Positions 3,841 through 40,105 of a stretch of DNA of 64,000 nt are shown in pieces (positions within the stretch are counted from its first letter, which is position 1; every line of letters starts with the position of its first letter). The translations under genes were made by a program, and so were the position numbers. The stretch is from assembly GCF_026571515.1 (NCBI RefSeq), contig NW_026864722.1, forward strand, positions 62,001 through 126,000, read 5' to 3'. The notes beneath the pieces are model-generated. The model did no database searches. It was not told where the DNA came from and worked only from the letters and a program-made list of their open reading frames with translations. The stretch comes from Ruditapes philippinarum. Taxonomy: Eukaryota.

Positions 3841-5269
3841 ATGGCTTTCACTTCACCGGTGATTATAATATTGTTTTATCTTGTGACGTCATCGCTTGCT
3901 GACAATTCAGACAAGCCAGTAACAGATAATCGTGACATAGCTAAAGACTTTGACGACTTTAAAAAAGCTATGACCGAAACCCATGCACGAGACATTCAAA
4001 GACTTGAGGATATTATAAACGCTCAAGGAATGCAAATTCAAAAGCTTGAATCTGACAATGCTATGATGGCTTCTGCAATACAAGATCTGCAAAGAAAAAT
4101 AGAAAAAATGACTGTCAAGAAAGACGATGTTTTGAAAAGTGCTGGGAAATCACAAAGCGACGAAACGTTTAGAAAAGCGTTTTCAAAATCAAACGTCTCC
4201 CTGCAGAAGAGAGGTAAAAATAATTCTGTTTCAATGAAGCTATCTTTTAGAAAAATTACTTTTATTCATATTCAAAAAGTTAATTTCATAATTTTAAATA
4301 AAGCAACGCTTAGAGTGAATAAGTCTATAATGAAAGGGATATAATACAGTTTAACCTTTGTTAAAACCACTTTCAAATAAAGGCCATAATGCAAATAAAA
4401 GCAACTCTTCAGCAACTCTTCATTGATTAAATAGAACATGATAACGGCCAAATAAAGACCACTTGTCTATAAAAGTCACGTTTGATCTCTGCTTTGGGTG
4501 GAAGGTGTTTGATACAAGATCCCATGTTACATATTCTATAAACAGATAATATGTTGTTCTTGAACAAAATATTATAGTAATTATTCACCATACATAAATG
4601 TTAACACTATATGTCATTATTTAGAAATCTATCAACATTTGTAAGCAATATTTTATAAGAATAATAATTTTATATATTTCTATTGTTTTTATCAATATTT
4701 GAATTACTGATTGAAAATGTCCTATTAGAGACTTACAGATTTTCATTTTATAAAATCTGAAGGAAAACTTAAGAGATTTCAAATGTTTTACATTTCTTAT
4801 TTCATACAAATGCTTAGTGCTAGAAAAAAAATTGCTTTATCCTTAAGGTCAATACACTATGGTGGGAAGAGCAATCGCCGAAAGCAAAGTTGCATTTTTT
4901 GCCTCAGTTACAACCAACCTTGGACATTTGGGTCAAGACCAAGATATCATATTTGACCACGCTGTTACAAATATTGGTAATGGTTATCTACCACACCACG
5001 GAACGTTTGTGGCACCAGTCTCTGGAACGTATGTGTTATTTGTCACTTTACATAACCAAGATCCGGCGGATACCTGGGGCCATTTTGTTGTTAATGGGTC
5101 AATTGTTGCAAAATTATTTTTGCATTACGGACAATCCTCTCAGACGGTAATTGTATATTTGAGACAAGGAGAAGACGTTTCAATACAAAACACAAAGACA
5201 GACCGGAGCATATTCGGGGACCGCTACAGCACATTTAGTGGATTTCTGTTGTATTTGTTGGCTAAATAA
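3841..5269 (+). CDS. C1qDC protein, unit 1 (signal peptide + coiled coil + gC1q), ~264 aa; exons 3841-4213, 4848-5269
   Basis: Hydrophobic N-terminus and heptad stalk. Donor AGAG|GTAAAA and acceptor TTAAG|GTC join in frame (phase 1). gC1q motifs VAFFA, IIFD.AVTNIG.GY...GTFVAPVSGTY and YSTFSGFLL are present. A small deletion replaces the C-terminal tail with LLAK. Confidence 0.88.
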
Positions 5270-7107
5270 AATTGATTGGGAAGTCTTCAAAAAATTATGA
5301 TATAATAATACAATACATAATTTCTAAATATTGATCATTATATTATATTACCATTTTCCATGAATCATACTAAACTAAATTTGATTACGATTATTTTTAA
5401 AGGTATCTTTCTGGCATTGAAAAATAATCCTCAAGAGGTCAATTCGTTCCGCTGCTCAAATATCGGAGATGAAATTGAAATTGATGGCATTATTTTTGTT
5501 GGATTGACAAAGCAGGTTATATTTCTGTCTTAGACTATAAGACTTCTAGGAACAATTTATAAATTAATAAATAAATGTAGTTTTGATCTTGCTTTTTAAA
5601 GAAACACTTTTAGTAAATTAAGTTTGCGGTCACTCTTATATGTTTTCTTTCTACAAAACGTAAAAGTAAGTACCTTTAAAACAAAGTCTTAATCAGTTAC
5701 AAGACAATGCCATCTGACAAAGACATCTACATGTAAGTTGTCTGATAACTGTAGAGCCATTAACTAAATCAGTAAAATTACTTTTTATTAAAAGAACTAC
5801 AAAAACATGAAATTTATAATTCTTGAAAAAAAAATCAAGTGAACACTTAAAATGGAAAAGGTTTATTAAGTAATATGCTTATGTTTGTGCGATTCCTAGC
5901 ACGATTGATTGTTAAGCGTTATAATGCTTTTCTCTTTTTTTATTTTGCAAAGAAAAAAAAAACATAATAAAATAAATAATTGCGTCCTATATGCTCAGAA
6001 AAAAAAGGTTGCAGACACGCAAAACATTGTTCACAATAACAATGATTTTAAGTTATATGTATAGCTTAAAACCGGAAACAAAAACAAAGACTAATTGTTG
6101 GAAATATACCAGCGACAATAAGTCATATTAACCTGTGAGGGAAATAATCAACCAAATTGCTCTATTGTTGTATTACATTTCTCATATGCAAACAATTGTA
6201 TAAAAAATCTCTTAAAATGGAGACGCAAATTTTATGCATTTGTGAAAGAAATATGACTTGAATAAAAGGTCATGAAGTGTTGTTGAAAGGTGAGAATTGA
6301 AAATTTTCCTTTTTTCCCCTTTTAAGATTCATAATGAATACCAATCAGTAGAATGACGATATATCCATAAAGTACAGATTCAGTTTTATCTTGTTCGCGA
6401 AATTCAACACTTAATAATTACTGGACAATCCTTGAGAAATTTTTCGTTGAATATGAGCATTTAAAGCTTTCTCAATACATTGATTTTTACTGTATGAGCA
6501 CCATTATACATCTATAGAAGGCCAATGGTTATCATTAAAAAATATCACGTGGACAATGTCAACATCAAAAGGGCAACGTCAAATTTAAATGCCAAAATAT
6601 ACCAGTGTTACTTTATTTAATTAGTCTTTTAGCAAATGGAACTTATGATAGGTAGCAAAAGGCTGTAGATATTGTCTCTGCGCACTTTTTTCAGAATAAA
6701 AAATCTAATGAAAGTAGAAAAGTTTTGACAGTTAATGATGCAACCGACGAAGAAGATAACGACGATAAAAATGATCATGATGACGCAGGCAATGTTTTAG
6801 AAAATGACGATGATATTAATGACAAAGATATTGTGATGAAGATGACGACTTTAGCAATGATGATAACGATTATTAACATGGCCATTGCGCAGGCTTCGAG
6901 ACAAACTTGAATCGGAGACCGTTGATATTTACTATCATGTTCATGCTGACCATAAAGTAGAACGTAAACATTTCCTGTCTTAATAATCTTTGTCAATGAT
7001 ATACTATTTGTAAGCAAAAAGTATCATTGTCAGCCAGACCTAACCCCACCCACTTTCCTTTATAAAATAGTGTGAGATGTATTGCTGATTTTGTAGAAAT
7101 CGTCCAA

Positions 7108-9159
7108 AACTAGAACTGCCATTGTAATGGCGTGAATGTCCCGCATACCACTCTGTCAGAATCAACAGTGGTCATTTAGAGCTCAATGACAACCTCCCTG
7201 CCAATTCTGAAGGTAGTAAGCCAGTGCATTGCTAAGTTAAGTATTCTACATGTTTTTAGTGGCAAAGATCAAGGTGACCTTTACCTTTGACCTACTGACC
7301 TCGAAACAGAAATAGCCACAGCATGACTTGAAGTCATGCCACTGCTTAACTTGAGGTCATGCCACTACATGACTTCCATCCCCAATTCATGCAGATTTGC
7401 CTGGGGGTGTTTATGATGAATATATATGAACATAAATATACGCTTCAAATGTGAAAAGGTCAACATTAATACACTGTGGCCAGACATTCTTAAACATTTG
7501 AGCAGATAAGCTTATTGAAGTAAAAGCCCATGTGACCTCGGCCTATGACATAGTCACCTAAAAATCAATAGGGGTCAACTACTTGACAAACTCGATACCA
7601 AATATAAAGACTATTGACCAAAGCATTATTAATCGATTGAGATGACAAACTTTGAACTTAAGACCCTTGCGACCTTTGACCCAGTGACTTCAAAATCAAT
7701 AAGGGTCACCTTATGGTCATGATCAACCTTCATGACAAATATGAAGACGGTGTATTAAAGGCTTCTTAAGTAATTGGACGGTCAAAACATTTTGATGTCA
7801 ATGCCATTGTGACCTTACCCTTTACCAAATGACCTCAAAATCAATAGGGGTCATTAAATGGTCATGACAAAACTCCATGCCAAAAAGGAAGTCTGTCAAA
7901 GGATTTAAAAGTTATTGCGTGGGCAATCACTTTTAGTTCAGGCTCTTCTGACCTTGACCTTTAACCCAGGGATCTCAAAATCAATACGGGCCGCCAATGG
8001 TCATGACAAACCTTCATGCCAAAAATAAAAGACTGTGGGTCAAAGGATTCTAAGGTTATTGGGCGGACAAATTCTTTAATGCAAGGCTTCTGTGCCCTTC
8101 ACCCCGTGACCTAAAAATCAATAGAGTTCAACTTATGGTCATGACTAACCTCAATGCCAAATATGAAGACTGTCGGTCAAAGGAATCTTAATTTATTTGG
8201 CGGAAAACCTTTTTAATAAAGGCTCTTCTGACCTTGACCTTTGACCTAGTGACATCAGAATCAATAGAGGTCATCTTCTAGTCATAACCAACCTCAATAC
8301 CAAATATGAAGACTGTTAACTAAAGCATTCCAAAGCTGAGTGGACAAGCTTTTAAGTTCATGGCTCCTGTTACCTTGACCTTAAGCCCAATTTCGTCTAA
8401 ACAATAGGGGTCATCTAATGGTTATCACTAACGTATGAAAGAAAAAATATGAAAATTAAAGGTCAAAGGATTCTTGAGTTATTGAGAGAATAAGCTTTTT
8501 ATAGTCAAGTCCCCTGTGATCTTGATCTTTGACCCAGTGACTTCAAAATCAATAGGGGTCATCAAATGGTTATGGCTAACCTATAACAAATATGAAGGCT
8601 GCTGTGGGTCAAAGGATTTTTAAGTTATTGGGCGGACAAGCATTATTTTAGTTAAGGCTCCTGTGCTCTTCACCTTTGACCTTGTGACCTAAAAAATAAT
8701 AGGAATCATCTACTAATCATGACCAATCTCAATCTCAAATATGAAGACTGTGGGTCAAAGGAAACTTAAGTTATTGGGCGAAAAAGCTTATTTTTATTCA
8801 AGGCCCCTGTGACCTTGACCTTCGACCCAGTGTCCTCAAAATTTACTTACCTCCATCACAAATATGAAGACTGTGGGTCAAAAGATTTTTAAATTATAGG
8901 GCGGACAAGATTTTATAAGTCAAGGCCCCTGTGACCTTGACCTTTGACCTGGTGACCTCAAAATCTATAGGGATCATCTAGTAGTCATGACTAATCTGAA
9001 TACCAAATATGAAGACTGTGGGTTAAAGGAATCTTCAGTAATTGGCCGGACAAGGAAAAATCGACAGACGGCCGGTTGGCAGGACGGTGGGATGGACGAA
9101 CAAGCTGTTTCAAGTACTAGTATACCATCCTTACAACATTATTTGTGCATGGGTTTAAT
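7108..9159. mobile_element. HINE/pearl-like non-autonomous element carrying ~11 tandem ~140-bp repeats
   Basis: Units contain TGACCTTGACCTTTGACC...AAAATCAATAGGGGTCA (7530-9050), followed by a GACGG-type microsatellite near 9062-9100. It interrupts the A-run of GTCTTCAAAAAATACTGAT, which is intact in paralogs (2902-2920, 14036-14054). Confidence 0.75.
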
Positions 9160-9209
9160 TACTGATTCGCTGTAGATTCGTGAGGACATTATATGCAATC
9201 TACGTTCGG

Positions 9210-10444
9210 CAAAAGCTTGAATCTGACCATGTCGTGAAGAATTCTGCAATACAGGATCTGCAAGGAAAAATAGAAAACATGACTGCAAAGAAAAACAATG
9301 GTTTTAAAAGTGCTGGTAAATCACACAGCGACGAAACTTCTACCATATCACAAGTCTCCCAGAAGAAGAGAGGTAAGCCTAAAATTTCTGTAACAATGAA
9401 GCTGTTTTTATTCATGTTATATTTATGTTCTTTATTCATATTCAGAAAGTCAATTACACGATTTTAAATAAAGTGGAAAAGTCTATATCGAAAGGGATGT
9501 TATACAGTTAAACCTGTGTTAAAGACCACTTTCAAATAAAAGCCATAATGCAAAAAAGGCCAGTCTTCAGCAACCCTTCATTGATTAAATAGAACATTAT
9601 AACCTCCAAATAAAGGCAACTTATCTATAAAGGTCATGTTTGGTCTCTCCTTTGGATGGCAGGTGTGAGATACAAGATCCCATATTACATATTTTATATA
9701 GCAGATAATGTATTGATCTTGAACAGAATATTATTATTCATCCTACATAAATGTTCATACTGTTCCATTTAGACTTTTATCAACATTTTTTTAAGCAAAG
9801 TTTTATAATAATATCAGTTTGATATATTTCTATTGTTTTCATCAATATTTGAATTACGTATGGAAAATGTTGTAGACCTATCTACTTTCAGTCCATTTTT
9901 TTTATTTTATAAAATCTGAAAAAAAAAGAACTTAAGCGAGTTTAAGTGTATTACATTTCTTAGTTCATACCAATGGCTAGTGCTAGAAAAAGTGCTTTAT
10001 CTTTAAGGTCAACATAAGATGGTGGGAAGAGCAAGCGCCGAAAGCAAGGTTGCATTTTTTGCCTCAGTTACACCCAACCTTGAACATTTGGGTAAAGATC
10101 AAGATATCATATTTGACCACGCTGTTACAAATATTGGTAATGGTTTTCTACCACACAACGGAACATTTGTGGCTCCAGTCTCTGGAACATATGTATTATC
10201 TGTTACATTACTCCACATAGCCGCAACGAATACCTGGGGTCATTTGGTTGTTAATGGATCAGTTGTTGCAAAATTTTATTTCAATAACGGACAATCCTCT
10301 CAGACAGTTATTGTATATCTGAGACAAGGAGAAGACGTTTCAGTACAAAACACAGCGACAGACCGGAAGATAGATGGGGACCGCTACAGCACATTTAGTG
10401 GATTTCTGTTGTATGAAGATTTCTCTGTAAACATTGTTGGCTAA
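9210..10444 (+). pseudogene. C1qDC unit 2: 5'-truncated stalk (9210-9372) with intact open gC1q exon (10008-10444)
   Basis: Upstream-flank sequence is fused directly to mid-stalk CAAAAGCTTGAATCTGAC, so TATA, exon 1, ATG and signal peptide are absent. Donor 9373 and acceptor 10007 are intact, and the head ORF is uninterrupted. Confidence 0.75.
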
Positions 10445-10913
10445 ATAAAATTGATTGAACAGTCTTCAGAAATTTATGATATGATAAAACAATACATCAT
10501 TTCTAAATTTTGTTCATTATATAATATTTTTTCTTTCTTTGTTTTTCCCCATGAATTTCGAGTGACGAACAGCAGAATATTTTCTTAGATCGTTTTGGGC
10601 GTACTTAATAGGGGATTAAGATTTTCTCTGTTTGGTTAGTATATATTGTGATGCGCAGGTGCATAGAGAGGGAAAATAAAGTAGGACGTATAAATGGAAA
10701 ACATTAACCAATTAGAGTCAGAATTGCATACATAAAAAAAATAGAATCCCTAAGCTTAAACATGAACAACGTTTACAGTGACAGTGAGTTAAGAGATAAC
10801 AAGAATTATTTAATATTTTATCTAACTATAACGCTCTTCATATATATTGATTTAGTAATTTACTAAAATCAGTTGAATTTCGACCTTTTTGCAGACAGAA
10901 TTCTTGTCTGACA

Positions 10914-11068
10914 ATGGCATTTTCTTCAATGCAATTGATAGTACCATTGTTTTATCTCATGACGTCATCGGATGCTGACAATACTGACAAGCTAGTAACA
11001 GAAAATCGTGATATTGATAAAGAATTTCACGATTTAAAAAAATATGTTTCAACAAAACTTGAAGCTAT
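10914..11068 (+). pseudogene. Orphan 3'-truncated C1qDC stalk exon
   Basis: MAFSS...KKYVSTKLEA matches the unit-6 stalk, then homology stops abruptly at 11068. No donor site or own head exon. Confidence 0.75.
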
Positions 11069-14610: not shown

Positions 14611-15833
14611 TTTGTCGTGTTTAGCGTTTTAAGGAGACCGTTTTTCACGTTCTGGTTAGTATATGATTATGTTAGTATATATTATATTATGATGACGAGC
14701 AGGTGCAAAGAAAGTGAAAATAGAGTAGAAATTGTAAACGGGAAACATTATTCATGACGTGTCAGAATTGCATACATAAAGAGAATAAAAACCCTGAACT
14801 AAAACATGTACAACGTTTAAAGCAACAATGAGTTAAGGTGTTAATTAAATATTTAACCTTTCCAATATTGCAAACAACAAAATACGCGTTGAATTTATTT
14901 CTTTCATAACGCACACTTGCACATACGCATGCATGAACGTATGCAATATTTTGGCAAAAATTCACTCTCATTACATTACGATATGTTATTGTAATAGTCT
15001 TGTAAAATTGCCATTGAATTTGTTTCTTTATGACGCCCTTAGGCACGAACACGCGCAGTATTGTTGTAAATATGTCAATATAAATGGACGGTATGTTATT
15101 GTAATACTAGGTTTTGTTCGATTAGTCATTACATATGTTATAATAAAAAGGTAAAGACAACGTCTCTAATGATGTGAAATAATTATAAGGTAAGCTTACT
15201 GCACCAATGTAGTAAGTGAGTAAGGAACCAACCGTAAACGTTCTGAAATGAGCAATAAATTAAATGAATATGTCATAGACATACAATGAATTGATAACAT
15301 TTTAACCAGATATGATGTATATTTGAACATAACCTGGTGCTAATGCTTGAAGATCATTGTATACATTTTAAAAGGTGTGAAACAATTGATGTCAATTATA
15401 TGACTCTAGTTACCTTCCTTGACTTTTGTGTTAGATACAACAATGACGCCAATAACGATTACAATAATAATGATTATGATCAAAATGACGATAAGATGAT
15501 AATTGTGATGAAGATGACGATTACAAACAGTAATGATGACGGTGATGATTATTTGAAGCAGACGATGTCGAATGTCGACATGTCGACATGTTGGTTCTCC
15601 TACTGTTTCTTTTGATGAATTAATGGCATATCTAATTTTAATAATTATCATTTTACTGATGATGACAGAAAAACAAATTAAATGAGGAACACAAAGAATG
15701 CTTATATTAAACTATAAGCAAGTACCTTTACAAGAGTTCTTATCTTACTATCACGTTCTTCATATATATTGACATAATAATTTACTAATAAGTTAAATCT
15801 GGACTTTCTTGCAGACAGAAAACTCGTCTGACA

Positions 15834-17251
15834 ATGGCTTTCACTTCACCGGTGATATTTATGTTGTTTATTCTTGTGACGTCATCGGTTGCTGACAATT
15901 CAGACAAGCCAGTAACAGATAATCGTGACATAGCTAAAGAATTTGACGATTTTAAAAAAGCTTTGACCGAAACCCATGCACGAGACATTCAAAGACTTGA
16001 GGATATTATAAATGCTCAAGGAATGCAAATTCAAAAGCTTGAATCTGACAATGCTTTGAAGGATTCTGCAATACAGGATCTGCAAGGAAAAACAGAAAAA
16101 ATAACTGTCAAGAAGGACGTTGTTTTGAAAAGTGCTGGGAAATCACAAAGCGACGAAACGTTTAGAAAAACCTTTTCAAAATCACAAGTCTCCCTGCAGA
16201 AGAGAGGTAAAATAATTCTTTTTCCATGAAGCTATCTTTTAGAAAAAATACTTTTATTCATATTCAAAAAGTCAATTTCATAATTTTAAATGAAGCAATC
16301 CTTAGAGTGAATAAGTCTACTATGAAAGGGATATAATATAGTTTAACCTTAGTTAAAACCACTTTCAAATAAAGGCCATAATGTAAATTAAGGCCACTCT
16401 TCAGCAACCCTTCATTGATTACATAGAACATTATAACGTCCAAATAAAGGCAAATTGTCTATAAAGGTCACGTTTGATCTCTGCTTTGGGTGACAGGTGT
16501 TTGATACAAGATCCCATGTTACATATTCTATAAACAGATCAAATATTGTTCTTGAACAGAATATTATAATAATTATTCATCATACATAGATGTTCCTACT
16601 TCATTTAGAACTTTATCATCGTTTTAAGCAATATTTTATAAGAATAATAATTTTAGATATCTCTATTGTTTTTATCAATGGAAAATGTCCCATTTTAGAC
16701 TAACTTATTTTCATTTTATAAAATCTGAAGAAAAATTTTAAGAGATTTCAAATGATTTACATTTCTTAGTTCATACCAATGGCTAGTGCTAGAAAAAAGT
16801 GCTTTATCTTTAAGGTCAACATAATATGATGAAAAGAGCAAGCGCCGAAAGCAAGGTTGCATTTTTTGCCTCAGTTACAACCGACCTTGAACATTTGGGT
16901 CAAGACCAAGATATCATATTTGACCACGCTGTTACAAATATTGGTAATGGTTATCTACCACACCACGGAACATTTGTGGCTCCAGTCTCTGGAACCTATG
17001 TTTTCTCTGTAACATTAAATCACTGGGGAGCAGCGGATACCTGGGGTCATTTTGTTGTTAATGGGTCAATTGTTGCAAAATTACATTTGCATAACGGACA
17101 ATCCTCTCAGACGGTAATTGTATATTTGAAACAAGGAGAAGACGTTTCAGTACAAAACACAGCGACAGACCGGGTCATATATGGGGACCGCTACAGCACA
17201 TTTTGTGGATTTCTACTGTATGAAGATTTCTCTGTAAACTTTGTTGGCTAA
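15834..17251 (+). CDS. C1qDC protein, unit 3, ~269 aa; exons 15834-16206, 16815-17251
   Basis: Signal peptide, coiled coil, in-frame phase-1 GT-AG intron, complete gC1q domain. Confidence 0.9.
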
Positions 17252-17991: not shown

Positions 17992-18128
17992 TCTCGAATA
18001 TTGCTAAAGAACTTGAGGAATTTAAGATAATTATACCTCTCATTAAGATTAGAAGCTCTGACTGAAAACCATGCACGAGAAAGACTTGATAATATTATAA
18101 ATGATCAAAGAAAGAAAATTCAAAAATA
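17992..18128 (+). pseudogene. Decayed internal fragment of a C1qDC stalk exon
   Basis: ATTGCTAAAGAACTTGAGGAATTTAAGATA...GAAAACCATGCACGAGA aligns with the unit-5 stalk (22879-23015) but carries indels. Confidence 0.6.
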
Positions 18129-19249: not shown

Positions 19250-20692
19250 ATGGCATTCACTTCACCGGTGAAAATTATGTTGTTTTATCATGTGACGTCA
19301 TCGGTTGCTGACAATTCAGACAAGCCAGTAACAGATAATCGTGACATAGCTAAAGAATTTGACGATTTTAAAAAAGCTATGACCGAAACCCATGCACGAG
19401 ACATTCAAAGACTTGAGGATATTATAAATGCTCAAGGAATGCAAACTCAAAAGCTTGAATCTGAAAATGCTATGAAGGATTCTGCAATACAGGATCTGCA
19501 AGGAAAAATAGAAAAAATGACTGCAAAGGAAAACAATGATTTTATAGGTACTGGTAAATCACACAGCGACGAAACTTCTACCAAATCACAAGTCTCCCAG
19601 AAGAAGAGGGGTAAGCCTAAAATTTCTGTTTCAATGAAGCTATCTATTAGAAAATTTACTCTTTATTCATATTCAGAAAGTTAATTACATGATTGTAAAC
19701 AAAGCAACTCTTAAAGTGGAACAAGTCTATAATTGAAGGGTTGTCATACAGATAAATCTGTATTAAAGACCAATTTCAAATAAAGGCTATAATGTAAATA
19801 AAGGCCAGTCTTCAGCAACCCCTCATTGATTAAATAAAACATGATAGTCTCCAAATAAAGGCCACCTGTCTATAAAGGTCATATTTGATCTTTTTTGTGT
19901 TGCTGGTGTGAGATATAAGATCCCATATTACATATATTATATATAGCAGATAATATATTGTTCTTGAATAGAATATTAGTATTCATATAAATGTTCATAC
20001 TGATTCATTTAGAACTTTATCAACATTCTTAAGCAATATTTTATTAGAATATCAATTTTATACATTTCTATTATTTTATCAATATTTCAAATACTTATTG
20101 AAAATGTGCCCATTGTTGACCTACATATTTTTATTTATAAAATGACTAAAATCTGAAGAAAAAAAATCATAAGAGATTTCAAATGTTTTACATTTCTTAG
20201 TTCATACAATTTCCTAGTGATAGAAAAAATGCTTATTTTTAAGGTCAAAGTAAGATGGTGAGAAGAGGAAGCGCCGAAAGTAAAGTTGCATTTTTTGCCT
20301 CAGTTACACCCACCCTTGAACATTTGGGTCAAGACCAAGATATCATATTTGACCACGCTGTTACAAATATTGGCAGTGGGTACATTCCACATCATGGAAC
20401 GTTTGTGGCTCCAGTCTCTGGAACGTATGTTTTCTTTATCACAGTAGAAAAACTAGATAAACTAGACACAGCGTATACCTGGGGTCATTTTGTTGTTAAT
20501 GGGTCAATTGTTGCGAAACTAGATTTGAATTACGGACAATCCTCTCAGACGGTAATTGTAAATCTGAGACAAGGAGAAGACGTTTCAGTGCAAAACACAG
20601 AGACCGACAGGACCATAAGAGGGGACCGCTACAGCACTTTTAGTGGATTTCTGTTGTATGAAGATTTCTCTGTTAACAGCTTTGTTGGCTAA
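19250..20692 (+). CDS. C1qDC protein, unit 4, ~269 aa; exons 19250-19610, 20244-20692
   Basis: In-frame phase-1 intron (AGGG|GTAAG ... TTAAG|GTC) and complete gC1q with a 3-aa KLD loop insertion. The signal peptide core carries K and H substitutions. Confidence 0.87.
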
Positions 20693-22794: not shown

Positions 22795-24837
22795 ATGGCA
22801 TTTACTGTACTTCCAACAATATTGTTTTATCTTGTGACTTCCTCGGTTGCTTACAATGCTGACAAGTCCCTTACAGTTTCTCGCGACATTGCTAAAGAAT
22901 TTGAGGATTTTAAGATATACATTTCATCTATAATGGAAGCTATGGCCGAAAACCATGCACGAGAAATAGGAAGGCTTGAGCATATCATACATTCTGAAGG
23001 GAAGCAAATTCAAAAACTTGAATCTGACGATGCATTGAAGACTTCCGAGATTAAGGTTCTACTTGGAAAATTAGAAGGAGCAGCGATGGCATTAAAAGTA
23101 CCGAGAAATCAGAAAGCAAAATTACACTACGAAAACTTAAGGGAAAGTTGACAAAGCCACATACTTTTTTGAAGAAAAAGGTAGATATGACCAGTTATAA
23201 TTCAGTAAACCTTTTGCTTTTAGAATGCCTAATGAATATTGTTGTATACTTATTAAGAAGCATTTATTTGTAATACCGTGATAAAGAATGGAATACAAAA
23301 TATAGTTATACAATTTATATTTTACAGATATGCTGTTTTAGTTGTACAGACAAAAATGATTTTGTTTCCATGAAGCTATCTTTTAGAAAATTACTTTTAT
23401 TCACATTCAAAAAGTGAATAAGTCTATTATGAAAGGGATATAATACAGTTTAACCTTTGTTAAAAACCACTTTCAAATAAAGGCCGTAATGCAAATAAAA
23501 GCAACTCTTTAGCAACCCTTCATTGATTAAATAGAACATGATAACGGCCGAATAAAGGCCAATTGTCTTTAAAGGTCACGTTTGATCTCTGATTTGGGTG
23601 GCAGGTATTTGATACTAGATCCCATGTTACATATGCTATAAACAGATAAAATATTGTTCTTGAACAGAATATTATAATAATTATACATCATGCATAAAAG
23701 TTCCTACTGATTCATTTATAACTTTATCATCATTTTAAGCAATATTTTATAAGAATTATAATTTTATATAATTCTATTGTTTTATCAATATTTGAAATAC
23801 TGATGTAAAATGTCCCATTTTAGACTTACAGATTTTCATTTTATAAAATCTGAAGAAAAATCTTAAGAGAGTTCAAGTGTTTTACATTTCTTAGTTCATA
23901 CCAATGGCTAGTGCTAGAAAAATTGCTTTATCTTTAAGGTCAACATAATATGGTGGAAAGAGCAAGCGCCGAAACCAAAGTTGCAATTTTTGCCTCAGGG
24001 TCAGGGTATCGCATTGTAACATGGCCAGCGATTGGCTGAAAAAAAAGTGCAGGGAAAACCGTATGAGTCAATTTATATATGAGGTGATTGGATGGAAGTG
24101 GGGTATTTTTAAGTAAAAAACTAATTTAAAAAGTAACACTACACTGTTTTCTGAAGAAAATGAAATATTTCATGAGTCTCTGTGATAATTTTAACTTGGA
24201 TATTTACATTTATAAAAAGTGTATGTCAGTCCTGTGATCAGCAGAAAATTTCAATGAAAAGGGGTTAATCCTCTCTGAAGTCATTTTGCAAAAAATTTGG
24301 TTGGCTACCCCTATATAACAAGATCATTTTCATGTGTCAGGCATTTCATTCTGCTAGAAAAATTAGCTCTTTAGCATGAAAACTCAATTTTAGGTAGGAT
24401 TAGGGACCATTTCTTATAATGTGAGTCTATGGAAATATCAATGTGAGTGTCTGACCGTTACAACCGACCTTGAACATTTGGGTCAATACCAAGATATTAT
24501 ATTTGACCACGCTGTTACAAATATTGGTAATGGTTATCTACCACACCACGGAACATTTGTGGCTCCAGTCTCTGGAACGTATGTATTATTTGTAACTTTA
24601 CATAACCAAGATCCGGCGGATACCTGGGGCCATTTTGTCGTTAATGGGTTAATTGTTGCAAAATTATTTTTGCATTACGGACAATCCTCTCAGACGGTAA
24701 TTGTATATTTGAGACAAGGAGAAGACGTTTCAATACAAAACACAAAGACAGACCGGAGCATATTCGGGGACCGCTACAGCACATTTAGTGGATTTCTGTT
24801 GTATGAAGATTTCTCTGTAAACAGTATTGTTGGCTAA
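22795..24837 (+). pseudogene. C1qDC unit 5: frameshifted stalk (22795-23180, stop at 23151) and gC1q exon (23939-24837) interrupted by a 458-bp insertion
   Basis: Stalk homology continues in another frame (DGIKSTEKSES) after ~23080. The head is split at GCCTCAG|...|GTTACAACC. Confidence 0.85.
23999..24456. mobile_element. Unclassified 458-bp non-autonomous DNA element inserted in a gC1q exon
   Basis: Termini GGTCAG...CTGACC form a 6-bp inverted repeat. The empty site GCCTCAGTTAC is present in paralogs, and only a single G is duplicated. Confidence 0.75.
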
Positions 24838-26100: not shown

Positions 26101-27548
26101 ATGGCATTTTCTTCACTGGTGATAATACCATTGTTTTATCTTGTGACGTCATCGGTTGCTGACAATTCAGACAAGCCAGTAACAGAAAATCGTGACATTG
26201 CTAAAGAGTTTGACGATTTTAAAAAATATATTTCAACAAAACTTGAAGCTATGGCCGAAACCCATGCACGAGACATGCACAGACTCGATGCTATTATAAA
26301 TGCGCAAGGAATGCAAATTCAACAGCTTGAATCTGACAATGCTATAAAGGATTCTGAAATACACAATCTGCAAGGAAAAATAGAAAAAATGACTGCAAAG
26401 AAAAAAGATGGCTTTAAAAGTGCTGGGAATTCACAAAGCGACGAAACTGTTAAAAAACGTTTTCCAAATCACAAGGATTCCTGCAGAAGAGAGGTAGACC
26501 TAAAATTTATGTTTCAATGAAATTATCTATTAGAAAATTTACTTTTTATTCATTTAAAAAGTAAATTACATGATTTTAAATAAAGCAACCATTAGAGTAC
26601 AAAAGTCTATAAAAAGTGCATAATTGAATCGATGTAACACAGTTAAACCTGTGTTAAAGACCACTTTTAAATAAAGGCCACCAACCTTCAATTAAATAGA
26701 ACATTATAACCCAAAATAAAGGCCACTTTACAGGTCATGTTTGGTTTTTCCTTTGGGTGGCAGGTGTGAGACACAAGTTCCCATATTGCATATTTTATAT
26801 AGCAGATAATATATGGTTCTTGAACAGAATAATAGTATACGTACATGTTCATACTGTTTCATTTAGAACTTTATCAACATTCTTTTAAGCAATATTTTAT
26901 AAGAAAATTAATTTGATACATTTCTATTGTTTATCAATATTTCAAAAACTTATGGAAAAAGTACCCATTGTAGACCTACATATTTTTATTTATAAAATGA
27001 CTAAAATCTGGAGAAAAAAATCATAAGAGAATTCAAAAGTTCTACATTTCTTAGTTCATACAAATTCCTAGTGATAGAAAAAAATGCTTTATCTTTAAGG
27101 TCTAAATAAGATGGTCAGAACAAGAAGCGCCGAAAGCAAGGTTGCATTTTTTGCCTCAGTTACACCCACCCTTGAACATTTGGGTCAAGACCAAGATATC
27201 ATATTTGACCACGCTGTTACAAATATTGGCAAAGGGTACATTCCACATCATGGAACATTTGTGGCTCCAGTCTCTGGAACGTATGTTTTCTTTATCACAG
27301 TAGATAAACTAGATAAACTAGACACAGCGTATACCTGGGGTCATTTTGTTGTTAATGGGTCAATTGTTGCGAAACTAGATTTGAATTACGGACAATCCTC
27401 TCAGACGGTAATTGTAAATCTGAGACGAGGAGAAGACGTTTCAGTGCAAAACACAGAGACAGACAGGACCATAAGAGGGGACCGCTACAGCACGTTTAGT
27501 GGATTTTTGTTGTATGAAGATTTCTCTGTTAACAGCTTTGTTGGCTAA
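26101..27548 (+). CDS. C1qDC unit 6; exons 26101-26493, 27100-27548; one base short in an A-run (frameshift allele, assembly error, or rescued by an alternative acceptor)
   Basis: Intact signal peptide and stalk until TAAAAAACG at 26451. Adding one A restores KKTFSKSQGFLQKRG and phase 1. The head is open and nearly identical to unit 4. Confidence 0.6.
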
Positions 27549-30500
27549 ATACAATTTGACTGGACATCCTAAATCAACTGATAATTTTTAAAACAGTTTC
27601 AAATTTTTGTAGTTTGTAATATACTTCTAACTTTTTTTGTTGTTGAAAGTAATATTTCTAAAGGCATAGAGTAATGAATGCCAAAAAGTTTGGTTAGATA
27701 AACTAAATTTTGTTGCATGTCAACTTATTTTCATTGCCAAAAATTCCCTATTAAACGTAATCCGTTTATTTGTTTAAATACCGGGGATAAAATAGGAATT
27801 GAAGGAAATTTCGGATTGGATACAATTCTATTTTTTGTTTTAGACCAAGATAGGACCAACTTATAGAAACTGCTAAATAAATTCAGTTTAAAATTTAATC
27901 TTCCTTTTGAAACAAAATCCTTCAGAAAATTTGGTTTGTAGCCACTCTTTTAACATGTTTTCTTTCCATTTAAACAACATTTCAAGTACCTTTAAAAAAA
28001 GTCCTTATCAATAACAAGACAATGGAATATGACATAAATAGATACATGAATATGTATCTCCTAACTGATAAATGTAGAGCCATTAATTCAATTATTTAAA
28101 TTTTATTTTTTTTAAATGCATTCCACCAATGCCAAAACTCCTAAAAACATTAAATTCAAATTTCTTAAATATATCAAGTGAAAGCATTTAAAATGATAAA
28201 TATGCAAAGGATTATTGAGAAATATTGTCAGAAGTAAACTGAAAATAAATATTCTTTGCGATTCGTAGCCCCTTTGAGCGCAAAGCGTTGCAAAGTCTTG
28301 TCATTTTTTAAAGATATTTTGCACAAAGTTCATGGTCTACAGATACATCAAATTGTACACACATTTTGAACAATATTTTCAGTCCGTCATAGAATCTCGA
28401 GCTCAATGGAGTCACTTTAAGATAAATGCTGCCGATTTCGTGCTAATGTATGTTAAGAGTATGTCTGTTGTCAATTTCTTCTGCTATTCAACGATTTTTC
28501 GATTGTACTGTTTGACAAAATTAGTATAAGAATAACATGAGATTTACTTGCATTTTTTTTTCAAACGATACGTGCGATAGAATACATACTCTGTTTTGTT
28601 TTGTACGAAATTTAACTTTAATTATTAAAGGACAATCCTTTCAATGCATTGATATTGAATTTTACATTTTAATGCATTGAAACCATTCATTGTAACTCTT
28701 AAAAGGATAGTGGTTATCAGTAAAATTCACAAGGACAAGGTCAAAATCAAAGGAAATGGTCTAATTCAAATTGCAAAATATAACCTTTTCTTTGATGTAT
28801 GAAGTCTATGGCTTATAGAATAAAGACGTTATATGACCAAAATTAAAAATAAATGTCCACAGAGAGACAAACAGACACATTATTAATGCTTATATTTTAT
28901 TTCTTAAAACATTTTTATTGTTGGGGTCCTGTTATAGTTAAACAAATACTCATTGACCATGTGCTTCTTCTGTTACTTTTGACTATTAGTATAGTTAAAG
29001 TAATTTAGTATTTTGTATGGAAATCGAAATACTACTTTGTTTACATTTTACTACTTTTATGACAAATATTGTCAAATACAGCACTCTTTTTTTAAGATGA
29101 AAAGTAACTAACATGCTTTGAAACCATTTAAAGCTCATGTTTCCCCTTTTCTGAGGACATATATGTTTTATATATATTTGCTTTTAAGCGGGGCGGTATT
29201 TAGTAATTCAATCTTAGCATGAAAAATTACCAAACTTGTATGGAAGGGAGATTAATGAATTTGATTATGTTTGAAAAATGGTTTAAATAAATGTCAGATC
29301 CTGAAGAAAGTAGTGGTAAATGTGAAATAATTTATCAGAAAAGTAGCAAAATGGTAACAAAGTAGTATTTTAACTAATACACAGAATACATATTCGCTAT
29401 TACTGTACTAATTGCAAAAAGTAACAGATAAAAAAAAGATGGTTCAGATTATTGGCCATTTAATAAATGTTTGGATAATATAAAAGACATCAACATTAAA
29501 AAGCTTTTGAACATATAAAAATAAGTTTTTGTAATGGCTTAGGGCCTTTAATTGTTTTCTAAACTAAACTTAAAGAGAAATCTTTCAAATTGATACACGT
29601 ACCTGAAAATGGCATTTACTGTACTTCCAACAATATTGTTTTATCTTGTGACTTCCTCGGTTGCTTACAATGCTGACAAGTCCCTTCCTTACAGTTTCTT
29701 GCGACATTGCTAAAGAATTTGAGGATTTTAAGATATACATTTCATCTATAATGGAAGCTATGGCCGAAAACTATGCGCGAGAAATAGGAAGGCTTGCGAA
29801 TATCATACATTCTCAAGGGAAGCAAATTCAAAAACTTGAATCTGACGATGCATTGAAGACTTCCGAGATTAAGGTTCTACTTGGAAAATTAGAAGGAGCA
29901 GCGATGGCATTAAAAGTACCGAGAAATCAGAAAGCAAAATTACACTACGAAAACTTAAGGGAAAGTTGACAAAGCCACATACTTTTTTGAAGAAAAGGGT
30001 AGATATGACCAGTTATAATTCAGTAAACCTTTTGCTTTTAGAATGCCTAACGCATATTGTTGTATACTTATTAAGAAGCATTAATTTGTAATACCGTGAT
30101 AAAGAATGGAATACAAAATAGTTATAAAATTTATATTTTACAGATATGCTGTTTTAGTTGTACAGACAAAAATGATTTTGTTTCCATGAAGCTATCTTTT
30201 AGAAAATTACTTTTATTCACATTCAAAAAGTGAATAAGTCTATTATGAAAGGGATATAATACAGTTTAACCTTTGTTAAAAACCACTTTCAAATAAAGGC
30301 CGTAATGCAAAAAAAGCAACTCTTCAGCAACCCTTCATTGATTAAATAGAACATGATAACGGCCGAATAAAGGCCAATTGTCTATAAAGGTCACGTTTGA
30401 TCACTGATTTTGGTGGCAGGTATTTGATACTAGATCCCATGTTACATATGCTATAAACAGATAAAATATTGTTCTTGAACAGAATATTATAATAATTATA

Positions 30501-30830
30501 CATCATGCATAAAAGTTCCTACTGATTCATTTATAACTTTATCATCATTTTAAGCAATATTTTATAAGAATTATAATTTTATATAATTCTATTGTTTTAT
30601 CAATATTTGAAATACTGATGTAAAATGTCCCATTTTAGACTTACAGATTTTCATTTTATAAAATCTGAAGAAAAATCTTAAGAGAGTTCAAGTGTTTTAC
30701 ATTTCTTAATTAATACCAATGGCTAGTGCTAGAAAAATTGCTTTATGTTTAAGGTCAACATAATATGGTGAAAAGAACAAGCGCCGAAACCAAAGTTGCA
30801 TTTTTTGCCTCAGTTACAACCGACCTTGAA
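27100..30830 (+). repeat. Segmental duplicate of ~20244-23998 (unit-4 head through unit-5 stalk and intron)
   Basis: Colinear, near-identical intergenic and intronic sequence at a ~6.8-kb offset. Confidence 0.9.
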
Positions 30831-31193
30831 CATTTGGGTCAAGACCAAGATATCATATTTGACCACGCTGTTACAAATATTGGTAATGGTTATCTACCAC
30901 ACCACGGAACATTTGTGGCTCCAGTCCCTGGAACGTATGTTTTCTCTGTAACATTACATCACTGGGAAGCAGTGGATACCTGGGGTCATTTTGTTGTTAA
31001 TGGGTCAATTGTTGCAAAATTATATTTGCATAACGGACAATCGTCTCAGACGGTAATTGTCTATCTGAGACGAGGAGAAAACGTTTCAGTACAAAACATA
31101 CATACAGACATGACCATGGGAGGGGACCGCTACAGCACATTTAGTGGATTTCTTTTGTATGAAGATTTCTCTGTAAACAATTTTGTTGGCTAA
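29609..31193 (+). pseudogene. C1qDC unit 7: frameshifted stalk (29609-29998) with intact open gC1q exon (30754-31193)
   Basis: A 4-nt duplication (TCCCTTCCTT, ~29681-29690) gives an early TAA, and it shares the second frameshift with unit 5. The acceptor and head ORF are intact. Confidence 0.8.
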
Positions 31194-33441: not shown

Positions 33442-34110
33442 ATGGCATTTACTTTACTGACAACACTTGTTTTACCTTGTGAGTTCATCGGTTGCTGACA
33501 ATACTTACAAGTCGGTAACAGACACTTGCGATATAGCTAAAGAATTTGAGGATTTTGAGATATACGTCTCAACAAGAATGGAAGACACGAGAATATCATC
33601 AATTATCAAAGAAATGTTAAAGAATATTAAAGATATTAAAATATGTGTACCATATTTATTAGATAGAGGAATTAAGTTTTTATAGGTAACTTGGAATTAT
33701 GTTGAAAAGAAAAAGAATTAATTTAAAATCATCGTAACTAGATTTATATTTTACTTTAATCGAAATTTATTTACATTAACTGTAATTGTGTTAATATTTA
33801 AATTAATATTTAAAATAAAGTCGAAGACAAACTAATATGATTTCATATGTCCTATATTGCTAAATTTATAAATATTCGTAGAAAATTGATTCATATTCAA
33901 GGTCAACAGAGTCAAGTTGAAAGAGCAAGCGCCGAAAACGAGGTTGACTTTTATTGCCTCAGCTACAACCAACCTTGTGCATTTGGGAAAAGACAAAGAT
34001 ATCATATTTGACAACGCTATAACAAATATTGTTCTCTGCTACTCTACATCATTAGTGAACATCATATTCATATGGACACTTGTTGTAAATGGGTCAATCG
34101 TTGCGGAATT
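33442..34110 (+). pseudogene. C1qDC unit 8: heavily decayed stalk (33442-~33590) and head (33902-~34110)
   Basis: MAFTLL start with a frameshift. Head relic IASATTNLVHLGKDKDIIFDNAITNI...LVVNGSIVAEL has internal deletions. Confidence 0.8.
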
Positions 34111-35162
34111 GAATATCTCAAATATTGCACGGTCTCTTGTTTTCCCGATTACCGAACAGGCATTTTTATTTTGGGACCATGTAACGCTTTTCCTGGAATG
34201 ACACTAATGTGTTTCAAAATTTTAACCAGTTTTGTTTAATGTTGAATTCTGCTTAAGCCGTTGCTAGGGGGCGTGGACGGTAACTTGCACTTTCTATTAC
34301 CATCCATAAACAGGCTCAATCAAGCTAAGCCTGCAACATTTTCTATTTTGCCGTGTCGGGCTTTCTTTAGGTATTCTGTTTTTTCTCTATTTAAGGTTTT
34401 GAGATATAGAAGCTGTATTTGGAAACCTATGTAACACAGTTTAAATTCATGTAAAAAAACCTGAATCAAATACTTGGCTGATTTATAATTTTTCAAATAT
34501 TTCTTAAGGGCATTAACCTTGATTGGAGTAACTAAAAAGTACCCACTTTGACGATTTGGGGTTGAAAGAATCACCTGATTGGGAGCGTGCATCACCCTAC
34601 TTGCTTTGTGTCCGAGCTTTCATCTACCATTTCAATCGGGAGATTATTGTCCCTGGTATTCAACATTTTTTTTGTGTTTGACATAGCTACCTTAGTTCGT
34701 TTTTGTAAAATTATTCAGACCCGTTTGAGCAACAGGAACAGGTAAAATTTGTTTCTATCTCTTTCCTGATTGGTTTCACCTGGAAGAGATGTATTCTCTG
34801 TAAATATGTGTTACTTAATCCAGAAAACATGACCGAAATGTGTTTTAATACGAAATGTGTTATAAAAAAAGAGATTTTCTCAGAATGAAATAGAATTATA
34901 AATGTAATCCAGTAGACTTGACTTTAAACTAAAACGTGTATTCCGACTAAGCATTAAGTGAAAATAAATCATGTAAATATATACTGTTAGCTTATAAATG
35001 TTTTCAGCCAGAGGGACATGCGTTATCTAAATCACACTGACATGAACTGAAAACTAAGACATGAAGCTGTCAAAGTATGATATTTAAACTATAACATGCA
35101 ATCATGTACTGTAAAACAGTCAAAGTATGATGTGTAAAATAAATTTCAAAAACATACATCCA

Positions 35163-36327
35163 CGAGGTATGATCAAAAAGTGCTCGGCCCGATATACCTC
35201 TAGCCACTACACTGACATTTACTCACGATACCGATATCTTATTCAGGATTACTGTACGAGTTATACGCGGTTTTACACAGATTAAGTAACATAAAACACA
35301 CTTTGATCAGTGGGGGGGGGGTCATTTAGACAAAATGGAGAAAGTTGAAATCAGAGCCGTCAACAAGTAAGGGATGTCCCCCAAGGACATCTATGATGAC
35401 TTCATGGATACACTTAAGAAGAAGTCCCCTTCCTATAGCACTGTGAAAAAACGGACTGCTGAATTTAAAAGGGGCAGGGGAAGCAGTGGAGATGATGAGC
35501 AGTCTGGGCGGTCAAAAGAGGCAACCAACGATGAAACTGCCGAAGCTGTGCACGATCTGGTCATGTGCGACAGAAGGCGACACATTCGAAGCATTGCTAG
35601 GGAAGTGGGTATAAGCTTTGGTTCAGTTCAGGCAATCCTGGCTGAAGCCTATGACATTACAAAGGTTTCCGCTAGATGGGTCCCCAGACAGTTGACTGAC
35701 GACCAGAAACGGACCAGGCTTGTCATTTCAAGATATATTTTGTCTCGCTGAGGATGAACCTGATTTTATCTACCGAATCGTAACTCAGGATGAAACATGG
35801 GTCCATCACTTCGATTCAGAATTCAACAAACAGAGCATGCAGTGGAAGCACCCTGGCTCACCCCCTCCGAAGAAATTCAAGAGGGTGTCATCAGCAGGGA
35901 AGATGATGGCTTCAATTTTTTGGGATAGTCAGGGGATAATCATGAATCACTAACTTGAGCAAGGTCGTACCATAAACGGTTCGTACTATGAAGACGAATT
36001 AAGAAATCTGCGTCAAGTTGCGATGGCTGCTGCAACTGACTGCGGCTTTGAAATTCTTCCACATCCCCTTTTTCTCCGGACTTGGCCCTCTCTGACTTCT
36101 ACCTGTTTCCGAAACTGAAAACCAAGCTTCATGGTAGACGTTTTGGAAACAATGAAGGTGTCATGGAGGCGATCAATGAGTTCTATTTTGAAGGGTTAAA
36201 CAAGTTGGAGCACAGGTGGGCCAAGTGCATTGATGTAAAGGGCGATTATATTGAAAAGTAAGACCATTAGTTGGGTTCTCTGACTACCGGATTACATCGG
36301 GCCAAGAACTTTTTTGATCAATCCTCG
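35163..36327 (+). mobile_element. Defective mariner (Tc1/mariner) DNA transposon
   Basis: ~30-bp imperfect TIRs CGAGGTATGATCAAAAAG.../...CTTTTTTGATCAATCCTCG, with TA on the right and CA on the left. The transposase relic at 35335-36261 has MEKVEIRAV, WVPRQL, TQDETW, SPDLALSDFYLFPKLK and GDYIEK*, with stops, frameshifts and an internal deletion. Confidence 0.93.
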
Positions 36328-38153
36328 TACTGCAAACTAAGGCATGTTTTCAGACTGAGCATGGCGTGTTAACTAAATCACGCAAACGTGTACTTTATAT
36401 ATAAGACACATCATCAGACTGAACGTTACATGTTACTAAATCGCGTACACATGTATGTAAGTGCCATGATTTCAGCCTGTATGTGACATGCAAACTAAGT
36501 CATAAATTAACCAAGTAATCAGCATGAAAGTCAATATATTTTAGAGTGGGTCAATATTGTTCGCTTCCAATACTGATTTGATATATAATAATGGTCCAAT
36601 CATAGCTGTGTAAAGATACAATTGCAATTGAATTTACCAAACTATTTGTTGATACATATTTGAGCAAATATCTAAACTATTGTCAATTGTAGATGGCTTT
36701 CCTTTCTGTTTTGTAAGATTTTGCGTACTCAAAATAGAGAAAAACAGAATCCCTTAAGAAAGTCCAACACGACAACAGGCTCGGTTTGATTGAGTCTGTT
36801 CATGGATGGTACTGGAAAGTGCAAGTTACCGTCCTCGCCCCTAGCACCGTCTGAAGCAGAATTCAACATTTAACTCACACATTTGGTCATACATTACTTA
36901 TAATATAATTAAAATGACGCTGGACACATACAGGCACAAAACTTGTGCATTCTTGCACGCACGCACGTGAATTTACAACCTCTCCAGCTCAAGTGTTATA
37001 GCCAGGGCTACGCACCAGATTATTAGTGAGAAGAAAGTTTAAAATGTCCTCACCAAATAATAATCGCTTACATATAGAGAAGTGAATCCATAGGTTAAAC
37101 ATGAACAGCGATAAAGCGACAGTGAGTTAAGAGATAAAAGGAGGGTGCAAAATTTAGTACTTAACCTTCTCAATTAAATTACGAACTACAAATTACAACT
37201 GAATTTATTTATTTCATTACACACAATTGCACGCGCACGCTTGCGTGCATGAAAACTGTGCTAGTTTTGGCAAACAATAAACAATATGTAAGTCAAATCA
37301 CCTTTATATTACCTCCTTTTACAACGTACTTTAGCACGCACATGCGCATTATTTCGCAAAGTGTTTAATAAAACCTGACGAAACATTATTTTAAAAATCA
37401 CATTTGTTCGATAAGTCATTATACATGTGTTATATCTAAAAGGTAAACGTTTGTGAACTCCTCGCACCAATGCTGTAAGAGAGTAAGAAACTAGCTGCAA
37501 AAGTTCTGAAATGAACGCTCAATTTAATAAATATGTCTTTCACATTAATTGAAAACGAGACTGCATTGATCAAACTGGATCCTATAATGATTAATATTTG
37601 AACACTACATAGTGCAAATGATGGAAGACCATTGTTCACATTTAAAAAGGTGTGAACTAATTGAATATAAGGGTAAAATCCTTGACTATTAAGTTAGAGA
37701 TTTTGGGGAGCTAACAGGATGATGAAATTGATTATGATTAAAATGAGTTAATGAGATAACAAACTTATGAAAAATTGCCCGAAATTATGATGATGACGAC
37801 AAAACAAAAAATGATACGGTGATATTTTTGAAGCTGATATGAAAAGATTCGATATTTTTAAAAAGTACTATTTTTTTTTCGAAAAATTCAAAATTTTAAT
37901 GGCATGTTTTTGACTTTCTTTAGGGATTCTTATTTTTCCTATATATCCTATTTTTAATAATTAATATTTTATTGATAATGACAGAAAAACAAACTAAATA
38001 AGTGGGACATAGAATGCTTCTTCTAATCTCTTAGTAAGTACCTTTACAATACTCCTTATCTTATATTCACGTTCTTCATATATATATTAAATTACTTATT
38101 TACCAAAATCAGTTTAATTTGGACCTTCTTGCTGACAGAAGACTTGTCTGAAA

Positions 38154-40105
38154 ATGGCATTTACACCACCGGTGATAATAATATTGTTTTATCTTGTGAC
38201 GTCATCAGTGGCTGACAATACTGACAAGCCAGTAACAGAAACTCGTGACATAGCTAAAGAATTTGACGATTTCAAAAAATATGTTTCAACAAAACTTGAA
38301 GCTATGGCCGAAACCCATGCACGAGACATGCACAAGCTCGAGGAAATTATAAATGCTCAAGGAATGCAAATTCAAAAGCTTGAATCTGACAATGCTATGA
38401 AGGATTCTGCAATACAGGATCTGCAAGGAAAAATAGAAAAATTGACTGCGAAGAAAAACAATGGTTTTCAAAGTGCTGGGAAATCACAAAGCGATGAATC
38501 TTTTAAAGAAACGTCTACCAAATCACAAGTCTCCCCCAAAAAGAGAGGTAGGCCTTAAATTTCTGTTTCAATGAAGCTATCTTTTACAATATTTACTCTT
38601 TATTCATATTCAGAATGTCACTTACATGATTTTAAATAAAGTAATCCTTAAAGTGGATAAATCTATAATGGAAGGGATATAATACATTTAAACCTGTGTT
38701 AAAGACCACCTTCAAATAAAGGCTTTAATGTAAAAAAGGCCAGTCTTCAGCAACCCTTCATTGATTAAATAGAACATTATAACCTCCAAATAAAGGCAAC
38801 TTATCTATAAAGGTCAACTTTGGTCTCTCCTTTTGGTGGCCGGTGTGAAATATAAGATCCAATATTACATATTTTATATTATACAATTATTGACTAGTGA
38901 GCCATTGAATATGATGTGATATTCACCGGCAGATGACATATTGACCGAGGCGATAGTTTTATTATATGAATAGGCTAAGAAATTTAAAAAATCACAAAAG
39001 TGCAACCTTATAATTATACATGTACAAATTTTGCCTCGTTGAAGCGCGGGAAGAAAGATGCACGTGTTAGGTGTGCAACGACTACGCGAACGCTGCGCAT
39101 ACAAAAATAATTCAAGTTTAGACTCATTATTGTGGTGTAACCCTTAAGTATGATAGTAAAGTATTGATATTTAATCGAGAAATATGCCATAAAGAAAAAA
39201 AGCAACAATTATTTTTTGAATAACACTCGTAATTAACAGTCTACGGTGTATGATCATTGAATATGAGTCTCAATCTATTTTTAGACTGGGAAAATCCAAT
39301 TCAGCCAGTGAATATGATACTAAACCCAGTAAATATGATTTTATAAAAAGTTCTGTTGACTACTGATTGGACCAATGAGATTGCAGCTATATTTAGATCA
39401 TATAATAAAGCTGAATATATCTTGTTCTTGAACAGAATATTATTATTCGTTCATAATGATTACATTATCAAATTTTTTGACAAGCAGTATTTTTAAGAAT
39501 ATTCATATGATACATCATCAATATTTGCCATACTTATGGAAAATTTACCCATTGTATACATATCCACTTTAAGTCCAGATTTTTATTTTATAAAATATAG
39601 GGAAAAACAGAGATTTTAAATGCGTTACATTTCTTTGTTAGAAAAAGTGCTTTATCTTTAAGGTCAACAACATAAGATGGTGGGAAGAGCAAGCGTGGAA
39701 AGCAAGGTTGCATTTTTTGCCACAGTTACAACACAACTTGAACATTTGGGAAAAGACCAAGATATCATATTTGACCACGCTGTTACAAATGTTGGTAATG
39801 GTTACCTACCACATCATGGAACGTTTGTGGCTCCAGTCTCTGGTACGTATGTGTTCTCTGTCACACTTCTGCATGGGGAGGAAGAAACCACATATGGTCA
39901 TTTTGTTGTAAATGGATCAATTGTTGCGAAATTATATTTGTATAGCCAACAAACCTCTCAGCTTATCATTGTTAATCTAAGAAAAGGAGATGATGTTTCT
40001 GTTCAAAACGCAGATCTTGATCGGACCTTTATCTGTAGTCAATACTGCACATTCAGTGGATTTTTGTTATATGAAGTTTCCTCTGTAGATCAAATTGTTG
40101 GCTAA
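38154..40105 (+). CDS. C1qDC protein, unit 9, ~278 aa; exons 38154-38547, 39663-40105
   Basis: Signal peptide, coiled coil, in-frame phase-1 intron, complete gC1q. It is the most diverged intact subfamily-A head. Confidence 0.9.
38880..39405. mobile_element. ~0.5-kb insertion in the unit-9 intron (unclassified non-autonomous element)
   Basis: Absent from paralogous introns at ATTTTATATAGCAGATA. Ends are approximate. Confidence 0.5.

Follow-up and report, generated by a model that had tools for sequence, protein, structure and literature searches.

How does a small family of tandemly duplicated genes come to display very different surface loops on one conserved protein scaffold, and does this diversity amount to an adaptive, or even antibody-like, repertoire? 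This question is raised by a stretch of 64,000 nucleotides from the clam Ruditapes philippinarum (NW_026864722.1, positions 62,001 to 126,000, hereafter the window), part of a 240-kb contig carrying a tandem array of C1q genes. The window contains eight globular C1q (gC1q) heads of this array, termed subfamily A; a ninth (L004) is located 3 kb upstream of it. A whole-genome search recovered only these nine heads, which share 72-100% identity and are all located on this contig, the next paralogs being near 50% identity. In what follows, the copies are called g0 to g8 and their heads h0 to h8. The reading that we favor, with a probability of about three in four, is that of a birth-and-death array of secreted "sC1q-like type II" genes, in which a conserved scaffold carries fast-evolving apical loops, segments are exchanged between copies and copies are lost.

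Variable loops and the C1q scaffold

All heads belong to the Pfam C1q family (E-values of 1e-19 to 1e-21); four of them scored 70-76 bits against PF00386, for a gathering cutoff of 23.7, and a profile search of the PDB matched Cbln1, C1q and C1QL. The AlphaFold2 model of the head, with a predicted local distance difference test (pLDDT) of 91, is a ten-strand jelly roll whose nearest solved folds, identified by Foldseek, are those of C1QL, Caprin-2, Cbln1 and C1q-B (template modeling scores of 0.75-0.84). Each unit consists of two exons separated by a phase-1 intron of ~600 nt, exon 1 encoding a long helix preceded by a hydrophobic N-terminus, and exon 2 a short linker followed by the gC1q head. 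The phase-1 splice junction, KKRG/QHKM, is confirmed by the NCBI gene models, and the four NCBI proteins listed in Table 1 are exact matches of g2 (partial), g3, g4 and g8. Full-length analyses used NCBI's own spliced models (P0027, P0028 and P0034), no exons being joined otherwise. Read off the sequence, the N-terminus (MAFTSPV..LVTSSVA) resembles a signal peptide. The stalk is predicted as a single long helix spanning residues 31-99 in a full-length model of low confidence (pLDDT 52 overall, 57-85 in the helix) which was used for this feature only, and it matches Pfam coiled-coil families weakly. No collagen-like Gly-X-Y repeats were found in the protein sequences of the array. This succession of putative signal peptide, predicted helical stalk and gC1q head is the architecture named "sC1q-like type II" by Gerdol et al.

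Among the 21 domain sites occupied by at least three different residues, 17 are located in four loops, A-A', C-D, E-F and G-H (Fisher p = 1.3e-6), which we call hypervariable segments HV0 to HV3, and three of the remaining four close strands C and E right beside the loops. The initial annotation, all of whose quoted peptide strings were found in the heads, was thus right in describing a variation concentrated in a few short segments. The same loops are variable in another cluster of paralogs in this genome. In h4 and h6, the C-D loop is three residues longer owing to a 9-nt tandem duplication reading KLD-KLD at the same place in both heads, which indicates that loop length changes by slippage. 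Only seven distinct loop sets exist, since h1 equals h5 and h4 equals h6.

Regarding the placement of these loops, the head has both of its termini at the same end of the jelly roll, and strand parity therefore predicts the four loops at the opposite end. Profile alignment to human C1q-B pairs HV2 with the segment DYAYNTFQ, which holds TyrB175. This tyrosine has been located at the gC1q apex (PMC6426777). In addition, the head is predicted to form a homotrimer with a score of 0.94, versus 0.00 for the best control, the runs showing a contact agreement of at least 97% and a partner pLDDT of at least 88; of 30 proteins solved as one-chain pairs, 21 attained this score mark, and of 23 solved as single chains none did. 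This result may stem from the memory of solved C1q trimers and hence indicates likeness rather than binding. Together, strand parity, the C1q-B alignment and the predicted homotrimer place the four loops at the probable apex of the trimer. The predicted interface includes residues 82-100, 65 and 119, according to which HV2 and two further loop sites would contact neighboring subunits near the axis, while HV1 and HV3 would be mostly free. Of the 41 interface residues, 22 are invariant, the other changes being mostly conservative or at the apex.

The framework, described in the initial annotation as almost identical at the nucleotide level, proved to be conserved as protein rather than as DNA. 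The proportion of synonymous differences (pS) in the three framework stretches that it named amounts to 0.135, 0.289 and 0.287, versus 0.245 for the whole head, the lower value belonging to DQDIIFDHAVTNIG. Synonymous divergence (dS) of the core framework ranges from 0.11 to 0.77 between copies and the introns differ by ~0.17. Outside the loops, the ratio of nonsynonymous to synonymous divergence (dN/dS) is 0.13 with a dS of 0.25, equal to that of the loops, which supports that the scaffold is kept by purifying selection and not by recent copying. These values also bear on concerted evolution, according to which gene conversion would homogenize the framework but spare loop cassettes of greater age and divergence. 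Such a process would fit the low pS of DQDIIFDHAVTNIG, and the copies do recombine with one another. Nevertheless, pS is 0.21-0.25 in the framework and 0.21 in the loop codons; the framework is thus neither younger than the loops nor identical at the nucleotide level, and this explanation, which largely fails, is rejected as improbable.

Recombination and selection among the copies

Exchange between copies is supported by the pairwise homoplasy index (PHI) test (p <= 5e-4) and by a gain of 43 log-likelihood (lnL) units when one breakpoint is placed near codon 62. One copy, g5, is a three-way mosaic. It matches g7 at 97-98% identity in its 5' part, up to approximately codon 55 of exon 2, g1 at 96-100% in its HV1-HV3 block and g2 at 91-95% in its 3' flank. 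Likewise, h0 contains an h4-like tract at codons 45-52, and two proteins of other samples, P0001 and P0004, available as protein sequences only, bring together loop sets belonging to different copies. These cases would fit a movement of whole loop blocks between array members and alleles. With a nearly invariant trimer interface, co-expressed copies could in addition form mixed trimers. Whether the conserved framework thereby serves as a recombination substrate which, along with mixed trimers, generates a population-level combinatorial repertoire of apices far exceeding the number of genes is a speculative extension to which we assign a rather low likelihood.

The initial annotation had further proposed that the segments are under diversifying selection, to be assessed with site models after recombination screening. 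Nine sequences were analyzed with our own implementation of the Goldman-Yang codon model (GY94, F3x4 frequencies), which for model M0 returned the same lnL as IQ-TREE (-1788.38 in both). By counting, the 24 loop codons have a dN of 0.42 and a dS of 0.25 (ratio 1.65), with a local dN/dS of 1.0 in HV1. On one tree, likelihood-ratio tests (LRT) favored M2a over M1a (LRT 15.3, p = 5e-4; dN/dS, or omega, of 5.8 at 3.6% of sites), M8 over M7 (LRT 18.2, p = 1e-4) and M8 over M8a (LRT 13.0), the M2a and M8 estimates converging on an omega of 5-6 at ~4% of sites. Three sites exceeded a posterior of 0.9, namely residue 67 of h3 in the C-D loop and residues 113 and 119 in the G-H loop. When separate trees were allowed for the recombining segments, the signal remained in the G-H segment (LRT 15.4, p = 4.5e-4), with an omega of 9 at three codons. 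As the initial annotation had noticed, many codon replacements in the variable segments involve several nucleotides, 78 of 217 differing codon pairs (36%) versus 17 of 290 (6%) elsewhere, and adding double and triple hits to M1a raised its lnL from -1744.1 to -1730.6.

Several observations weigh against the favored reading. With separate trees, neither the first segment (codons 22-61) nor the segment comprising HV1 and HV2 retained any signal. Once multiple hits were modeled, the comparison of M2a with M1a gave p = 0.14 for the full alignment (omega estimate 2.8) and p = 0.087 for the G-H segment (omega estimate 7.0). The evidence for an omega above 1 is therefore fragile, coming from nine sequences with only seven loop sets, and the claim of diversifying selection, significant on one tree, narrows to the G-H loop with partition trees and to p-values of 0.09-0.14 with multi-hit models. 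Finally, the initial annotation had the segments cluster on a single ligand-binding surface, to be mapped on a predicted trimer; a homotrimer is indeed predicted and the loops probably fall at one end of the fold, but the term "apex" derives from strand parity, one homology anchor and the interface list rather than from coordinates. Collectively, the sequence comparisons indicate that the loops change at the neutral rate or faster. Three codons of the G-H loop and one of the C-D loop are likely targets of positive selection, although nine sequences do not establish it.

The most serious competitor is that the loops are merely unconstrained, with an omega of about 1, and that they owe their diversity to fast neutral drift, indels by slippage, mutations of several nucleotides at once and exchange between copies in decay, without adaptive diversification. 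The separate trees point in this direction, M2a being equal to M1a in the HV1+HV2 segment with 44% of sites at omega = 1, as do the local ratio in HV1, the much better fit of the multi-hit models with their p-value for omega above 1, and the fact that five of the nine copies (g0, g2, g5, g6 and g7) are broken. However, the dN of the loops exceeds both the dS of the framework and the divergence of the introns, and the multi-hit point estimates of omega stay above 1. The broken copies, moreover, retain a low framework dN, indicating that their decay is recent, and the share of multi-nucleotide codon changes, 22%, matches the 22% expected under a Poisson process of independent single hits, so that no special mutation process is required. 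On balance, we regard the absence of adaptive diversification as unlikely, while still a possibility to be taken seriously. By contrast, a somatically or combinatorially diversified receptor system, as suggested by the comparison with antibodies made in the initial annotation, is highly improbable. In its favor one can cite only the likeness of a fixed scaffold that bears variable loops, along with the composition of the interface, which makes heterotrimer mixing conceivable. Opposed to it are a complement of nine or ten germline copies, only three of which (g3, g4 and g8) are clearly intact, and the fact that, in this haplotype, HV1-HV3 are inherited together as linked sets. Neither rearrangement signals nor banks of cassettes were observed, although no search aimed at loop donor cassettes in more distant paralogs was made. 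The likeness to complementarity-determining regions is thus descriptive only.

According to the birth-and-death reading, strong purifying selection would act on the beta-sandwich and on the greater part of the trimer interface, while the four apical loops would accept indels and change as fast as neutral sequence or faster. Segments would pass from copy to copy through unequal crossover or gene conversion whose breakpoints fall in the conserved framework, and there would be a steady loss of copies, be it to a frameshift, a truncation or the insertion of a transposon. The apical loops would probably serve to recognize microbial surfaces in a lectin-like manner, in which case the copies would differ in specificity.

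Comparison with known C1q systems

Germline-encoded variable immune lectins, such as the fibrinogen-related proteins (FREPs) of snails, are multigene secreted recognition proteins with variable binding surfaces. The clam array differs from FREPs by its scaffold, which is C1q and not fibrinogen or immunoglobulin. As in the trimers of the human C1q head (1PK6, 2WNV), C1QL, Cbln and Caprin-2, its heads combine a ten-strand jelly roll and conserved strands with variable loops, although identity to human C1q, C1QL, Cbln and Caprin-2 heads is only 25-31% and C1q-B has the longer E-F hairpin. These trimers carry recognition residues, such as TyrB175, at their apex, where the variable loops of the clam are likewise predicted. 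Unlike human C1q, the clam proteins have no collagen stalk and are predicted to form homotrimers instead of an A/B/C heterotrimer.

The closest precedent is found in the oyster Crassostrea virginica, in which sC1q-like type II genes form tandem clusters (Gerdol, Greco, Pallavicini 2019, PMC6835236). In these clusters, most domain sites are under negative selection while 4-11 "hypervariable" sites per cluster are positively selected, and unequal crossover has been invoked (PMC6835236). The clam array shares with them two-exon genes, a gC1q head and tandem duplication, along with a putative signal peptide and a putative coiled-coil stalk. It differs in being small, with nine copies in this venerid clam, and in that more than half of these are broken. 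In contrast to the oyster account, recombination within exon 2 is shown directly here, and an omega above 1 turns out to depend on how recombination and multiple hits are modeled; word searches of the text of PMC6835236 returned no mention of recombination or pseudogenes. The massive expansion of C1q-domain-containing genes in R. philippinarum has itself already been published (PMC5499747). Judged by this comparison, the clam array adds a case to a phenomenon already published for the oyster and does not represent a new kind of immune system. Nonetheless, with three intact genes bearing very different loops on one scaffold, it offers a compact and well-delimited locus for asking which targets bivalve C1q proteins recognize with their apical loops. 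It also calls for caution, as "diversifying selection" obtained from site models in tandem immune clusters can largely vanish once recombination between paralogs and multi-nucleotide changes are modeled.

Individual copies and surroundings of the array

The positions of the units, loops and neighboring features are given in Table 1.

Table 1. Features of the subfamily-A array and its surroundings (positions in the window; loop limits in g3 head numbering, assigned by DSSP on the model).
Feature	Position	Strand	Exon 1	Head exon 2	Remarks
g1	3841-5269	+	3841-4213 (putative signal peptide and predicted helical stalk), then phase-1 intron	h1 4848-5269
143-bp satellite	7671-8964				~8 copies
g2	9210-10444	+	homology begins near 9210, donor 9372	h2 10008-10444	head intact; XP_060567982.1, partial
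Orphan fragment	10818-11042	+	promoter and 5' part		no head
g3	15834-17251	+	15834-16206	h3 16815-17251	intact; XP_060567976.1
HV0, A-A' loop of g3	16880-16891				residues 19-22
HV1, C-D loop of g3	17018-17038				residues 65-71
HV2, E-F hairpin of g3	17081-17095				residues 86-90
HV3, G-H loop of g3	17159-17182				residues 112-119
g4	19250-20692	+	19250-19610	h4 20244-20692	intact; XP_060567980.1
KLD-KLD duplication in h4	20430-20465				9-nt tandem duplication
g5	22795-24837	+	22795-23150 (variant)	h5 23939-23998 plus 24457-24837	broken; three-way mosaic
High-copy element in g5	23999-24456				458 nt
g6	26101-27548	+	26101-26493	h6 27100-27548	head nearly identical to h4
g7	29610-31193	+	29610-29969 (variant), 98% identical to g5 exon 1	h7 30754-31193	head intact
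Decayed tenth unit	33467-34150	+	piece	fragment with internal deletions and stops
ORF upstream of g8	35374-35751				weak HTH_58 match
g8	38154-40105	+	38154-38547	h8 39663-40105	intact; XP_060567975.1
42-bp minisatellite	43406-43782				~8 copies
Spurious ORF over minisatellite	43369-43836	-			155 aa
Second C1q subfamily	44999-47493
Second C1q subfamily	52382-53542			53093-53542
Transporter gene exons	56333-60299	-			MFS_1

The lesions of the damaged copies are diverse. In g0, a 13-nt deletion shifts the frame of exon 2, whereas g1 has a 22-nt deletion near its 3' end by which the ~10 C-terminal residues beyond strand H are replaced; as judged from the sequence, this copy, affected in its tail alone, is possibly still functional. 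The first exon of g2 is devoid of its 5' half and hence of the signal peptide, and directly upstream of it lies a 143-bp satellite which may mark the rearrangement that removed this half. In g6, a 1-nt deletion in a run of A in exon 1 places the donor in phase 0, making this copy an apparent pseudogene, or possibly reflecting an assembly error, and in g7 a 4-nt insertion after the signal peptide causes a frameshift. In both g5 and g7, exon 1 is a variant in which an unrelated sequence ending in ...HYENLRES-stop takes the place of the 3' third, and the canonical AAGAGAG/GTA donor of the other units is missing. The most divergent member is g8, whose intron is larger by ~750 nt.

The head h5 is not a 5' truncation, a possibility that was ruled out, its exon 2 being interrupted by a 458-nt high-copy element. 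This element is bounded by short terminal inverted repeats (GGTCAG...CTGACC) and has more than 1000 first-look candidates in the genome, 40 scored copies being 95-97% identical to it; it resembles a young non-autonomous transposon with recent activity. A haplotig artefact was rejected as the origin of the pairs h1/h5 and h4/h6, whose exon 1 sequences and flanks differ.

A metagenome scan returned no loci related to the array. Between the decayed tenth unit and g8, an open reading frame (ORF) encodes a protein with a weak match to the Pfam family HTH_58, suggestive of a transposase-like N-terminus. On the 3' side of the array, a 42-bp minisatellite gives rise to a spurious minus-strand ORF with a repeated MLTCQIIVMTCA motif. 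Further 3', a second C1q subfamily, ~50% identical to subfamily A, is present as two units, one with a stop in its head fragment and the other apparently intact. The array is flanked by exons of a major-facilitator-superfamily transporter gene.

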